The position numbers and the translations under genes are program-made. This document shows positions 9,601-15,600 of a stretch of 64,000 nt of DNA, piece after piece (the first letter of the stretch is position 1; every line of letters starts with the position of its first letter). The stretch is from Macrostomum lignano (lineage: Eukaryota). Below the pieces are notes generated by a model that did no database searches, was not told where the DNA came from, and worked only from the letters and a program-made list of their open reading frames with translations. Where the stretch lies: the NCBI GenBank assembly GCA_002269645.1, contig NIVC01000632.1, positions 124,001 to 188,000 of the forward strand. The letters are read 5' to 3'.

Positions 9601-12600
9601 TGGCCGGGGCTCACTGCCACTGTGTCAGAGAGGCGCGGGTACTGGCCTGTGGGCACGACTGCCACCTGAATGAGATGAGGTTCAATTAGATTAGATTAAA
9701 TTGACATTTGATAAGATTTGATTCACGGACTACTTAAGTATAAACGACAATTAAGTAGTCCGTGATTTGATTATATTAGATTAGACTATACTGAGATTAG
9801 ATTGGATTAGATTAGATTAGATTAGATTAGATTAGACTAGATTAGATTAGATTAGATTAGATTAGATTAGTAGATTAGACTGAGATTAGATTAGATTAGA
9901 TTAGATTAGACTAGATTAGATTAGATTAGATTAGTAGATTAGACTGAGATTAGATTAGATTAGATTAGATTAGACTAGATTAGATTAGATTAGATTAGAT
10001 TAGATTAGATTAGATTAGATTAGATTATACTAGATTAGATTATATTATATTATATTAGATTAGACTAGATTAGATTAGATTAGATTAGATTAGATTAGAT
10101 TAGTAGATTGGATTAGATTAGATTAGATTAGATTAGATTAGATTAGACTAGATTAGATTAGATTAGATTAGACTAGATTAGATTAGACTGAGATTAGATG
10201 AGATTATATTAGATTAGACTGAGATTAGATTAGATTGACATTAGATTAAAATAGACTTCATAAAACTTGATTTTGAGACTTTGGACAGGCAATATGCGAT
10301 ATTTGTACAATTTACAAATAAAGAAGCGTCAACTGTCGGATTTGGCCATAGACAAAGCTCGTGGCCAATGAGAACTCAGCGATGGCGCTTTGCAATAAGT
10401 ATGTGCAAAAAACTCTGAACAGACCCTGAAGAATAGTAGTATCATTAGCTAGCAAAAGGCCCAGTCTATCTACATGTGGTAAGTGCAGGATGCACTCTCA
10501 ATTCAATGGCATTGTGCTCGCATATTCCACAGCCGTCTCACCCGCATGGCACTCTCGGCATCGCCTGACTCCAGCAGCCCCGAGTTCAGGATGGCGGCCG
10601 TCTTGCTCATGTTGGCGAACTGGCTTCCATAGGTGTCAGTTGAGTCCGTGAAGTAGCTGAACGTCAGACGAGCATCCGTGGCCTTGCTAGTGGACAGAAG
10701 CTCGGCAAAGTTCGACTTGTTGAACCAGTGGCAGGCGCCCAGCTGAGGATGGAGCATCGTCTGGAAGTTGAGCAGCGAGCAGGGCCGTCCGGCGAACCTG
10801 CAGTGGGTGAGCCCGATGCCCAGGCTGCTGCCGAACTGCCTGGTCAGCTGGTCGCCGCCAACCCGGTCGCGGATGACGCTCGCCACGGCTCGGATGGTGC
10901 CGTCTGGAGAACGGGTTCGCGCATCTTTTTGCTAGACGTTGCATCATCAATAGCTAGGGTTGTAGCCTAGAGGTTCCCGATCCCATTCGGAACAATTTGT
11001 GTCCCTGAGCAAGACGCTTAACTCTGCATTGCTTCAGTTCACCCAGCTGTAAAATGGGTGCCAGTGGGGTAACTGAGGCTGTGTGTGCGGCGACCCCCCA
11101 GTCCTTGGACTGAACAGCCGTACGCAGCCTTCAGATGCGCCGCGCAATAGCTGCGGCTGAGCTGTCGGTAGCACATCTGGCCATTTGGGCAGGTGTAATC
11201 AATTATTGTTATTAGTATTGTCCGATAGCTGGTGAGATCAATATATAGGCTTAAGAGATAGCAAGTGAGTAGGCTTAAAACTTAGAATAGATCGCGACTG
11301 AATATTCTCATGCCAAGGGAGAGAGAGAGAGAATGTACACAAGGCCGCGTACATCGGGGTAGGCCAGTTTGGCTAGTTTAGAGTTACTCATAAATAAACT
11401 ACATCAAAACACGCCCGGTGCTTCAAAGCCAAGAAAATCTTTCTCGACTTGAATTTTTTTTTTTAATTTTTAAATTTTTCTCGACTTGCAAGACCTTCTT
11501 GTGAGATTTATTAAAGCATCAGGACAAAAGCTCGAACGAGCGCACATCAACAGGCGTCTCTACACACTCTGCAACTTTGGGTTTGTCCCTGTTGGGTGCG
11601 AAGTGTGTCCAGGGACTCAATTGCAACTCACGGCAGGTGTCCAATTCGCAGGTGTTGAAGTCTGTGATTCCGCCGATCACGTAGGCGCAGACTGGCGAGC
11701 TGGAGTCGATCGCAATGACGCGTCTGCGGTTGGAGATTTGTGACAGCCATAACATGTACTACTTACCTACTCCAACTCCAGCTCAAGCCAATATACATCA
11801 TTTCGAGTGTTACCGATTTACAAAGCTTCCATCATTGAATAGAAAATTGTAGTTGAGCACAACTTTAACCGGTCGGCAGTAGGAGTGATTCAGCTCCATG
11901 TCTGACGTTTCAATGCTGACATTTGTAACTTTGTCTGGCAGAGAAAGTTTTAGAGGGGGGGTCAGATGCTGTAGCCATAAATCACGTTTTGCAGCTTAAC
12001 GATGGTTTCAAAACTCGTCGACTCACAGGCTACCGCTCCGGGATAGGTGACCGGGTAGTTGAGCTGCCCAGACTCCAGTCCAGCCTTGAGCTGCGCCCAG
12101 TTCATGCAGAGCTCTCGGCGTCTGGACTCCCGCTTAAATCCGGTGTACCGCTGCAGCTGCCGGCTGCTGAAGACGCCGTCCACGTCTGCGTTCAAGCAGT
12201 CGTACCTGGCTGACAGGGCTGAGGGTTCGTTTTAGTAGGGAGTTCAATGAAGCTGTTGTGAAACAGACCGATCATGAAGCTGACTGAGTGACTAAATATG
12301 ACTTAAAGACAGTGGCGGAACTCACGGCAGTACGGCACATTGCAGTACGTGGCCGCCAGCCTCCCACAGTCGCCTCGATAGAAGCAGTAAGGACCGCTGT
12401 TGAAGCTGCTCACTGATGACCGGTATGGCAGGTACAGAGGCTTCCTGTCTGAAACCGCCGGTCCAGGGGCGTTTTTAGGCAAAGCATCTGCGGCGCTAAT
12501 ACAGACAGACAGACAGACAGACAGACAGACAGACAGACAGACAGACAGACAGACAGACAGACAGACAGACAGACAGACAGACAGACAGACAGACAGACAG

Positions 12601-15600
12601 ACAGACAGACAGACAGACAGACAGACAGACAGACAGACAGACAGACAGACAGACAGATAGACAGACAGACAGACAGACAGACAGACAGACAGACAGGTAG
12701 GCAGGCAGACAGACAGACAGACAGGCAGGCAGGCAGACAGACAGACAGACAGACAGACAGACAGATACTAAGACAGACAGACAGACAGACAGACAGACAG
12801 ACAGACAGACAGACAGACAGACAGACAGACAGACAGACAGACAGACAGACAGACAGACAGACAGACAGACAGACAGACAGACAGACAGACAGACAGACAG
12901 ACAGACAGACAGACAGACAGACAGACAGACAGACAGACAGACAGACAGACAGACAGACAGACAGACAGACAGACAGACAGACAGACAGACAGACAGACAG
13001 ACAGACAGACAGACAGACAGACACACAGACAGACAGACAGACAGACAGACAGACACACAGACAGACAGACAGACAGATAGACAGACAGACAGACAGACAC
13101 ACAGACAGACAGACAGACAGATACTCATCCGCTCACTGGGATCCGCAAGCCTGAAGACGCTCATCAGCTGGTCGCGGACGGAGCCGCAGATCTGGGAATA
13201 ATTTCCCGGGCACTCGCTGACGCACCCAAAGGCCGAGGAGGCTGACCAGGTGCCACCAGTGACAAGACCAGGTGAGCAATGGCACCGGTTGCCAATGAGT
13301 CCCATATGGCTGTAGCCGCGTCCATAGCAACAGTGGGCGCAAATTTCCTGAGTCAAATCGTAGAGCTCATCGTTCAGGCAGAGCTCCGTGAAGTTCGCCC
13401 CGCTGCTGTTGAACGGCAGGCAGCCAACTGAGGCGAGGAGCGGGCCTGAAGTTGAGAGAGTTAAGCAGTTCGGTTGTTCGACCCCGGTTTGAGTAGGGCG
13501 GTCGCTGTCCTTGTTCTCAACACCATAGCAACTAATCTCACTGCCTTAACAACTAATCTCACTGCCTTAACAACTAATCTCACTGCCTTAACAACTAATC
13601 TCACTGCCTTAACAACTAATCTCACTGCCTTAACAACTAATCTCACTGCCTTAGCAACTAATCTCACTGCCTTAACAACTAATCTCACTGCCTTAACAAC
13701 TAATCTCACTGCCTTAGCAACTAATCTCACTGCCTTAACAACTAATGTCACTGCCTTAACAACTAATCTCACTGCCTCAGCAACTAATCTCACTGCCTTA
13801 ACAACTAATCTCACTGCCTTAGCAACTAATCTCACTGCCTTAACAACTAATGTCACTGCCTTAACAACTAATCTCACTGCCTTAACAACTAATCTCACTG
13901 CCTTGGCAACTAATCTCACTGCCTTAGCAACTAATCTCACTGCCTTAACAACTAATCTCACTGCCCTAGCAACTAATCTCACCACATCAGCAACTAATCT
14001 CACTGCCTTAACAACTAATCTCACTGCCCTAGCAACTAATCTCACCACATCAGCAACTAATCTCACTGCCTTAACAACTAATCTCACTGCCTCAGCAACT
14101 AATCTCACTGCCTTAACAACTAATCTCACTGCCTTAGCAACTAATCTCACTGCCTTAACAACTAATCTCACTGCCTTAACAACTAATCTCACTGCCTTAA
14201 CAACTAATCTCACTGCCTTGGCAACTAATCTCACTACCTTAGCAACTAATCTCACTAACCTCAGCAACTAATCTCACTGCCCTAGCAACTAATCTCACCA
14301 CATCAGCAACTAATCTCACTACCTTAGCAACTAATCTCACCACGCCCTAGCAGCCAATCGAATCCATTGAGCAGCCAACAACTCACGCGTCGCATTGTCG
14401 TGGAAGGCGGTGAGCGGCAGGCCGGGCGGCTGCCTGCAGCTGCGGTGGCTGTCGGGGAAGCCAGCGGCGAGGATTCTGCCAGCCAGCTGGTGCAGTCCGG
14501 CCTCCTGCAGCTCCCTGGCGGCCTCATTCCAGCCAATGCAGTCGCTGTAGCTCACGAAGGGCTCCAAGCTGGCTGATAGGCCGACTGTCTCACCCGAGTA
14601 GATGGGCACCGAGGCCAGGCTGCCTGAGTACTCCTCACCCGACTGGCTGGTCCGGCACGTTGATGTCGCTGGAGGTGGCGGGCAGTGGCCAATGGCCTTG
14701 ATAGCTCGTGTTTGACTTGGGTGACTTTGCACTGGGTTGAAGTCAAGAAAATCTCTCAAACACAATGCAAAAAGGAAGAGGGAGACGGGCGAGGGAGAGG
14801 AAGAGTGGGGAGAAAGGGGAAAGGGAAGAACGGAGAGAGAGAGGAGAGGGAGAGGGAGAGGGAGAAGGAGAGAGAGAGGGAGAAGGAGAGGGAGAGGGAG
14901 AGAGAGAAGGAGAGGGAGAGGGAGAGGGAGAAGGAGAGGGAGAAGGAGAGGGAGAGGAAGAGGGGAGAGGGAGAAGAAAGAGGGAGAAAAGCGCGACGAA
15001 ATAAGGAGAAGCGAGAGGGGAGGGGGAGAGTGAGAGATTTGTGAGTAGAGAAAAAGAGTTGGGTAGAAGTGGGGCCCAGGTGCATTTTGGTAAAGATGCA
15101 TTTGATACCTGAAGATGAAGAGCGGGAAGGCGAGAGCGATAAAGGAGCAGGAGCTGCCCGATCGGCTCACCCTGTCCCATGTACTGCAGCGCTGCCGTGA
15201 TGTTGGCCTCAGCCTGGGACATCACGTGACCCAGCGCGACCGCGGCTGCCGACAGTTCAAACTGCAAAACTCCGGCGCCTTCGGCACTCTCAGACAGGAT
15301 GTTGAACAGCAGGTCCCTCATCTTGCAGGCCGAATTGCACCTGCTGTTGCTGATCACCGAGTTGCTGTCTGCTTGATAAGTCAGCCGGCTCATGGTCACA
15401 GTGTCCGTGGGACAGAAGTACACGTCGGGAAACTCGAACGGCAGCGAGGTGGACAGGCTGGTGGAGAGCGGCACGCTGGCGAACTGCAGGCCCAGGGTGT
15501 ACATGTGGTAGGTGAAGCCGCCGTAGGTGCCCAGCAGGAAGCAGAGCCACAGGGCTTTGCCCAGCGTGCCCGCCTGCTCGCTGAACCTGCCGAGACCGTG

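Follow-up and report, generated by a model that had tools for sequence, protein, structure and literature searches.

Kringles are compact modules, each knit together by three disulfides, and they are treated as indivisible beads. A locus of the flatworm Macrostomum lignano raises the question of whether such a bead can be opened, and a second, complete domain be lodged inside it. The locus lies in a stretch of 64,000 nucleotides (hereafter the window, meaning the whole of the DNA analysed; GenBank assembly GCA_002269645.1, contig NIVC01000632.1, positions 124,001 to 188,000 of the forward strand), for which an initial annotation, made from the letters alone, had proposed that a WSC domain is inserted into a kringle by means of a symmetric phase 1-1 exon. 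Six consecutive exons on the minus strand of the window encode, in this order, a peptide with three cysteines of kringle type (K1N, exon 2), a WSC domain (exon 3), a peptide with three more such cysteines (K1C, exon 4) and a further kringle (K2, exons 5 to 7). Here, I argue that K1N and K1C probably make up, together, a single strongly diverged kringle (K1), with the whole WSC domain and short linkers lying in the loop between its third and fourth cysteines (Cys3 and Cys4), and that the cassette so formed sits in an unusual host, a predicted ion channel.

A probable interrupted kringle and its host gene

The strand, the coordinates and the 1-1 phases that had been assigned to exons 2 to 5 were reproduced by minus-strand translation and splice-site reading, and so was the presence of a complete WSC domain on a single 309-nt phase 1-1 exon, between a peptide with the motifs of Cys1 to Cys3 and a peptide with those of Cys4 to Cys6. 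The cassette as a whole (exons 2 to 7) is likewise bounded by phase-1 introns and, exons 2 to 5 being symmetric, the loss of any one of these four from the transcript leaves the frame intact.

Taken by itself, exon 3 scores 30.5 bits against the Pfam WSC family (PF01822, gathering cut-off 27.8 bits; E 4.2e-7), the match covering positions 2-81 of the 82 in the profile; within the complete protein, the WSC score is 26.6 bits. The segment K1N-WSC-K1C was modelled with AlphaFold2 (AF2) for two M. lignano homologs, using an alignment of the family to which the exon peptides of the window were added as extra rows. In a homolog, the WSC part was modelled with predicted local distance difference test (pLDDT) values of about 75-88, and Foldseek matched it to yeast Wsc1 (7pz2; E 4.7e-6, template modelling score relative to the target 0.75, root-mean-square deviation 3.1 A) and to Kremen1 (5fwt; E 2.5e-5). 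Judged from its sequence, the product of exon 3 is a WSC domain, the predicted WSC/PAN-like fold being that of the homolog model and not of the window protein.

The two peptides on either side of the WSC domain contain, between them, six cysteines in kringle order together with the flanking motifs C-x8-Y-x-G, C..W, N-x-CR-x-P-x-G, P-[WY]-C and Y-C-x-x-P-x-C. Across five sequences (the window and four M. lignano homologs) these cysteines are invariant, as are CR.., G.EY.G (GEEY.G), C..WN, CR.P.GLPL..F, GPYCF and C..P.C. The point at which K1 is split is the loop that leads from Cys3 (CRQPPG) to Cys4 (GPYC).

Relative to the Kringle profile of Pfam (PF00051, gathering score 34.3 bits), K1 carries two additional segments, namely a loop of 17-28 residues that follows the Y.G motif and precedes Cys2, and, between Cys3 and Cys4, the WSC domain with its linkers. 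With both of them excised, K1 matched the profile in four of six members of the family (P0002, 24.5 bits; P0003, 28.1; P0004, 25.8; P0007, 25.6; these P numbers denote M. lignano relatives, described below), with E values from 2.5e-6 to 3.6e-5 and over positions 4 or 5 to 79 of 79. Of four paralogs tested with K1N alone, deprived of the extra loop, two gave scores of 15.5 and 14.4 bits over profile positions 4-50, and the other two gave no match. Joining a reversed K1C to the loop-less K1N did not raise the score; the native K1C added 10-12 bits and extended the match as far as position 79, the last of the profile.

Profiles were also compared with known structures. A profile of K1 from which the WSC domain had been excised retrieved 14 matches from PDB, all of them kringles (tPA K2, ROR2, neurotrypsin, Kremen1, plasminogen, apo(a) and prothrombin; best E 0.044), and the alignment extends over the joint, from Cys2 as far as Cys6. 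A profile of the exon-4 peptide, built from eight natural sequences, found the C-termini of kringles in 11 of its 13 matches (Kremen1, E 0.031). Apart from Kringle, the Pfam families returned in the tests of K1 and K2 were weaker, sub-threshold matches of single sequences (PAS fold, MutS_IV and TPR_WDR35). The K1 of the window, which has no direct match of its own, is regarded as a kringle because it is homologous to the K1 of the family members, to which it is 44-57% identical.

K2 likewise has the six cysteines of a kringle. In all five homologs compared, the K2 region matched Pfam Kringle over profile positions of about 4-41 (E 1.6e-4 to 0.043; 14.6-22.3 bits, that is, below the gathering score), and 25 of the 28 PDB matches of a K2 profile were kringles. 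The gap between Cys3 and Cys4 of K2 measures about 34 residues, against the usual 13 or so.

The conserved cysteines number three in K1N, three in K1C, ten in WSC and six in K2. The counts in K1N and K1C being odd, at least one disulfide must cross the WSC domain or leave the module. The disulfides of the Kremen1 kringle are C32-C114, C55-C95 and C84-C109 (PMC5014086). Kringle pairs 1-6, 2-4 and 3-5, if formed in K1, would each tie one of Cys1-3 to one of Cys4-6, and would thereby staple the two halves around the base of the WSC domain. The termini of the latter would lie close together, as suits insertion into a loop, because the first and the last WSC strands adjoin in the antiparallel sheet of Kremen1, the order of which is beta1-beta5-beta3-beta4-beta2 (PMC5014086).

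The host of this cassette is a 12-exon gene on the minus strand (15660-6684), apparently intact and encoding about 1067 aa. Its model was built from homolog alignments, tblastn and splice-site reading; the reading frame opens with an ATG at 15660, is continuous through the 12 exons and closes with a stop codon at 6684, and all introns are GT-AG. The whole protein matches the Pfam ASC family (PF00858) with 152 bits (E 2.7e-44); the match falls into two blocks, one on either side of the cassette (profile 1-90 and 153-455), and the ASC domain is complete only with the cassette spliced in frame. A TAHG sequence (the HG motif), an FPDVYFC motif and both transmembrane segments (TM1 and TM2) are readable in the gene model, and the channel parts match ASIC5, FaNaC and ENaC in PDB. 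By its sequence, the extracellular cysteine framework included, the gene encodes a DEG/ENaC subunit (amiloride-sensitive sodium channel type), and its product is a predicted channel. The flanks of the cassette align with ASIC5 39-114 on the N-terminal side and with ENaC alpha 274-319 on the C-terminal side; as these segments bracket the finger in ASIC5 and ENaC alpha, the cassette is placed in the variable extracellular finger. The initial annotation had described the domains of the exons well, yet it had overlooked their host, for the two ASC blocks put the whole cassette within a DEG/ENaC gene.

A number of observations weigh against the view that one kringle has been opened in this way. Native K1 sequences have no Pfam Kringle match, because the extra loop and the WSC domain interrupt K1; the best Kringle scores come from constructs with two inserted segments removed, no Kringle match attains the gathering score, and the excised K1 of the window and that of P0001 (two of the six members) gave no Pfam Kringle match at all. 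A profile of K1N only found nothing in PDB. From Cys1 to Cys6, K1 spans about 235 residues, far from the canonical spacing of about 80, and the module is heavily remodelled, with its extra 17-28 residues and with two predicted helices between Cys2 and Cys3, which is unlike a kringle. The AF2 models have a mean pLDDT of 63 and 54 (the latter with a 10-row alignment), with low confidence over the kringle parts (the first 50 residues or so stay below 50), and the kringle match that Foldseek returned for the model covers only 22 columns, at E 1.3. When the profiles of K1 and K2 were compared by hhalign their similarity was not significant, and K1 is therefore not describable as a recent duplicate of K2. 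Neither exhaustive nor word-based searches returned a relative with an uninterrupted K1, that is, with an empty recipient intron, or a relative devoid of WSC; the comparison of paralogs for the presence or absence of exon 3, which had been suggested at the outset, thus ended without a WSC-less relative. Finally, whatever function is attributed to the cassette is purely conjectural.

Part of this evidence would also suit a different reading, according to which exon 4 alone is the remnant of a kringle, exon 2 is a separate, lineage-specific cysteine module, and the cysteines pair elsewhere, in WSC, in K2 or in the body of the channel. It would account for the failure of K1N to match any PDB entry, for the lack of a Pfam match as long as the loop of K1N is in place (and for scores of at most about 15 bits once it is removed), and for AF2 models showing helices between Cys2 and Cys3 and low confidence elsewhere. 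However, in two paralogs the loop-less K1N does match Kringle over positions 4-50, a match that goes on to position 79 only if the native K1C is joined to it, and besides Kringle Pfam returned no other family than, in one paralog, a PAS fold below the threshold. Moreover, the motifs stand in kringle order and register (C-x8-Y-x-G, C..W, CR.P.G), and three plus three conserved cysteines fit kringle pairing exactly. A module unrelated to kringles in exon 2 is hence distinctly unlikely. As to the claim that the first kringle is split over exons 2 and 4, it draws strength from the motifs and from the profile matches of the excised constructs, and loses some of it to the gathering score and to the missing match of the window's own copy; a single interrupted kringle is the reading retained below.

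Relatives and proposed origin of the nested arrangement

Relatives of the window protein were found only in M. lignano. They are paralogs that go by the name 'WSC domain-containing protein' and are annotated, of the Pfam families, with WSC and ASC only; they include PAA/BOX15_Mlig007204g1 (P0001), P0002-P0005, P0007, P0009, P0159 and others; sharing 31-44% identity with the window protein over the full length, they are distinct genes. The near-complete homologs display the order ASC N-terminus, K1N, WSC, K1C, K2 and rest of ASC, the other matches being N- or C-truncated fragments of that same order; at least eight M. lignano protein clusters, annotated independently of one another, show it. 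Differences from the window protein concern the lengths of the Cys3-Cys4 loop of K2 and of the K1 linkers. At the one locus examined, that of P0001 (L001, NIVC01000440.1), the intron positions and phases of the cassette are identical to those of the window, namely K1N 1-1, WSC 1-1 (300 nt), K1C 1-1, and K2 1-1, 1-2 and 2-1. The order, the introns and the phases being shared with the P0001 locus, the layout is older than the divergence of the paralogs and is not the artefact of a single assembly.

Outside M. lignano, no instance of the full architecture came to light when 1.84 billion representative proteins were searched exhaustively with a profile; beyond the family this search was flooded by WSC-repeat proteins, and remote kringle relatives are not detectable by it. 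A homolog search with the insert alone gave no match, and the full-length protein as a query retrieved the family. Within M. lignano, P0016 and P0160 differ from the near-identical P0159 in that the 23-aa K1C exon is missing, and by a further difference of 12 aa at the K1N/WSC border; this may be either mis-annotation or real skipping of symmetric exons. For the WSC-less isoform that the initial annotation had thought possible, no evidence was found.

Modules of class 1-1 are known to insert into phase-1 introns (PMC3927616). Because of this rule, I infer an insertion of WSC into an intron of the kringle: a class 1-1 WSC exon would have entered a phase-1 intron of K1 before the macrostomid paralogs diverged. 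The signature of exon shuffling that the initial annotation had pointed out is confirmed as far as the symmetric 1-1 phases are concerned, whereas the insertion event itself is a deduction, a relative from before the insertion having not been found.

An identical topology could have arisen by loss instead of gain. An ancestor with the order kringle-WSC-kringle, or else a Kremen-like kringle-WSC pair beside a kringle, might have lost the C-terminal half of its first kringle and the N-terminal half of its second. Kringles do carry internal introns here and elsewhere, K2 being spread over three exons; all the exons concerned are symmetric and their loss is frame-neutral; the adjacency of kringle and WSC exists in Kremen; and there are annotated M. 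lignano models without the small K1C exon. Such a history would nevertheless call for two precise losses against one insertion, and no intermediate architecture occurs among the 1.84 billion representative proteins. In addition, the introns of the two kringles differ: those of K1 fall in the Cys3-Cys4 loop and are of phase 1, whereas K2 has a phase-1 intron between Cys2 and Cys3 and, in its Cys3-Cys4 loop, one of phase 2. A double exon loss appears therefore unlikely. As for the suspicion that no single protein of this kind exists, the exons belonging to separate genes or having been brought together by misassembly, it could draw on the fact that the layout of the window is known from genomic DNA alone, and that the introns are full of long tandem repeats which could mislead an assembly. 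Yet the order is the same in at least eight M. lignano clusters and at the P0001 locus, with identical phases at the latter, the frame runs on through 12 canonical exons, and it takes the cassette in frame to complete the ASC domain, all of which makes an artefact extremely improbable. A single insertion of the WSC exon into the kringle is the history favoured here.

Gene model and surroundings

The exons of the channel gene are listed in Table 1. At their start, the long forms of exons 2 and 4 have 21 and 13 residues, respectively, that are absent from the homologs; in tblastn comparisons with the latter, matches begin at about 14687-14663 and at about 12443, and phase-1 acceptors in frame are available at 14668 and 12448. 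The 3' ends and the phases that had been proposed for these two exons hold, but their 5' ends are probably shorter. Two cysteines of this gene are absent from the homologs, one in GHCPPPP, within the optional extension of exon 2 (14669-14731), and one in RGDCG (about 12375), between Cys4 and Cys5 of K1C. The long exon 2 would add the GHCPPPP cysteine and, together with the non-conserved RGDCG cysteine, the count would be even again; the two might pair, which would favour the longer exon 2.

Table 1. Exons of the DEG/ENaC gene, with positions counted from the first letter of the window
Exon	Position	Strand	Content	Support
1	15171..15660	-	Ends in phase 1; DEG/ENaC N-terminus: TAHG, TM1, FPDVYFC, start of finger	Pfam ASC E 1.5e-12, profile 1-90; residues 12-85 align with ASIC5 39-114
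2 (K1N)	14387..14731 (345 nt) or from 14668 (282 nt)	-	Cys1 TCRT, Cys2 DCIGW (DCIGWNEAA), Cys3 SCRQPPG; phase 1-1 either way	
3 (WSC)	13137..13445	-	309 nt, 103 aa, phase 1-1, 10 Cys	
4 (K1C)	12326..12487 (162 nt) or from 12448 (123 nt)	-	Cys4 GPYCFY, Cys5 TYCNV, Cys6 PYC; phase 1-1 either way	
5 (K2, first part)	12027..12209	-	183 nt, phase 1-1; Cys1 YDC, RYTG, Cys2 LCMNW	
6 (K2, middle part)	11814..11934	-	Phase 1 to 2; IETSD...SYCRP (Cys3)	Located via homolog motifs I.TPD...N[YF]CR
7 (K2, last part)	11632..11723	-	Phase 2 to 1; Cys4 SPVC, Cys5 NTC, Cys6 DTC	
8	10542..10903	-	DEG/ENaC extracellular domain resumes (CRFAGRPC...GACHWFN)	ASC residues 560-950, profile 153-455; aligns with ENaC alpha 274-319
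9	9457..9665	-	DEG/ENaC extracellular domain	tblastn with homologs
10	9033..9218	-	Small exon, 5' boundary uncertain	tblastn with homolog segment, E 7.9e-5
11	7013..7647	-	DEG/ENaC thumb and palm region	
12	6684..6895	-	TM2, C-terminus, stop codon	

The second kringle had been assigned two exons, which had to be revised to three (12209-12027, 11934-11814 and 11723-11632, with phases 1-1, 1-2 and 2-1). A direct junction of exon 5 to the exon starting at 11723, by way of a weak donor (TGTGA|GTCGAC), was considered and rejected, as the homologs revealed the exon 11934-11814 with a Cys3 of the NYCR type; the correct donor of exon 5 is the strong phase-1 site at 12027, as in the initial annotation. 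The model is uncertain at exon 10, where the phase-1 acceptor favoured by homology (9132) matches no canonical donor of exon 9. The upstream phase-2 acceptor at 9218 was used instead; it keeps the frame and adds about 28 unconserved, cysteine-rich residues. In the P0001 locus, a stretch of about 6.7 kb (L001 6064-12787) splits the counterpart of window exon 6; it is devoid of GT-AG borders, has reverse complementary ends (…GTACAACTACGTAT / ATACGTAGTTGTAC…) and looks like a transposon with terminal inverted repeats annotated as an intron.

Tandem repeats occur in and around the channel gene. In intron 1 there is an (AGGGAG)n array (14773-14987), the K1N-WSC intron has a 21-bp minisatellite of 39 copies (13529-14340), the WSC-K1C intron an (ACAG)n array of 155 copies (12501-13121), and the intron between exons 8 and 9 a (GATTA)n array of 97 copies (9764-10248). 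Outside the gene, a 21-bp array is found upstream (16009-16313), and a 15-bp array (6467-6673) follows directly after the stop codon.

A second, tandem paralog of the channel family is located on the minus strand at 1-2629, and runs past the start of the window. Its exon 1 (about 2560-2102) is 64% identical to M. lignano P0001, and the start of a kringle exon is present at 244-2 (…CRITPDGEEYRGNLSRVPV), in which the canonical CRITPDGEEYRG motif (YRG) is kept, a point in favour of kringle identity. Farther away, the minus strand carries an exon with a Zic-type zinc finger (31757-32638), a large exon of an acyl-CoA dehydrogenase with all three of its Pfam domains (35952-37109), and an exon of a TTC39/Iml2-like TPR protein (42651-43589). 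On the plus strand, 60027-63550 is a retrotransposon remnant or copy with reverse transcriptase, RNase H (E 2.8e-30) and a weak match to an integrase core; it is flanked by a short repeat at about 59438-59800 and 63627-63830, possibly long terminal repeats.

Possible function and comparison with known systems

In DEG/ENaC channels, the finger region governs gating as well as sensitivity to ligands and proteases. The cassette, placed after the first palm strand and before the beta-ball, would replace or expand the variable finger. By analogy with other proteins, kringle and WSC would form a binding head for a protein, a glycan or a matrix ligand, by which gating would be modulated. The WSC domain of yeast Wsc1 has been described as a mechanosensor domain, and yeast WSC domains as sensors of cell-wall stress. 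Along the same line, I tentatively entertain, as a possibility with the odds somewhat against it, that a WSC domain within a kringle within a DEG/ENaC finger makes up a new, lineage-specific sensor head of macrostomid flatworms, the kringle fold tolerating an entire disulfide-rich domain of 100 residues in its Cys3-Cys4 loop, and that through this head a matrix, glycan or protein ligand, or else mechanical pull, would be coupled directly to gating.

The modules are known and so is the mechanism of their shuffling; what is unusual is the nested result, and the host in which it is found. If true, the locus would be a clear example from nature of an exon shuffled into an intron internal to a module, resulting in an architecture that is nested, not serial. 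A kringle/WSC head on the finger, which is the site of action of ligands, protons and proteases, suggests a gating input unlike those described for DEG/ENaC channels. In current database entries, which list WSC and ASC only, the kringle parts are invisible. In the open-access literature, no description was found of a DEG/ENaC channel with a WSC domain or a kringle, or of a kringle with a domain nested in it.

Other elaborations of the DEG/ENaC finger are the GRIP domain of ENaC and the extra cysteine-rich regions of C. elegans degenerins. Like the cassette of the window, they are lineage-specific modules placed between the first palm strands and the beta-ball; however, they are not known to consist of mobile kringle or WSC modules, nor to be class 1-1 exon cassettes.

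The only other well-studied case of the two modules in company is the ectodomain of Kremen1 and Kremen2 (kringle-WSC-CUB; PDB 5FWS), in which, as in the window, a kringle is combined with a WSC domain. The two pack tightly in Kremen1 and jointly bind the ligand DKK (PMC5014086). Among PDB entries, the exon-4 peptide is matched best by the C-terminus of the Kremen1 kringle, and the WSC domain of Kremen1 was matched by Foldseek. In Kremen, however, the kringle is complete before the WSC domain begins, the arrangement being serial, whereas in the window the WSC domain lies inside the kringle, between Cys3 and Cys4; furthermore, Kremen, a receptor with a CUB domain, spans the membrane once, and the gene of the window encodes a predicted channel.

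Likewise, class 1-1 shuffling, as known for kringle, FN1, FN2 and EGF modules in the proteases of clotting and fibrinolysis (PMC3927616), involves symmetric 1-1 exons that enter phase-1 introns, a pattern to which both the WSC exon and the whole K1-WSC-K2 cassette conform. In those classic cases modules have been added between domains, like beads on a string; in the window, by contrast, the recipient intron lies within another module, and the product is nested.

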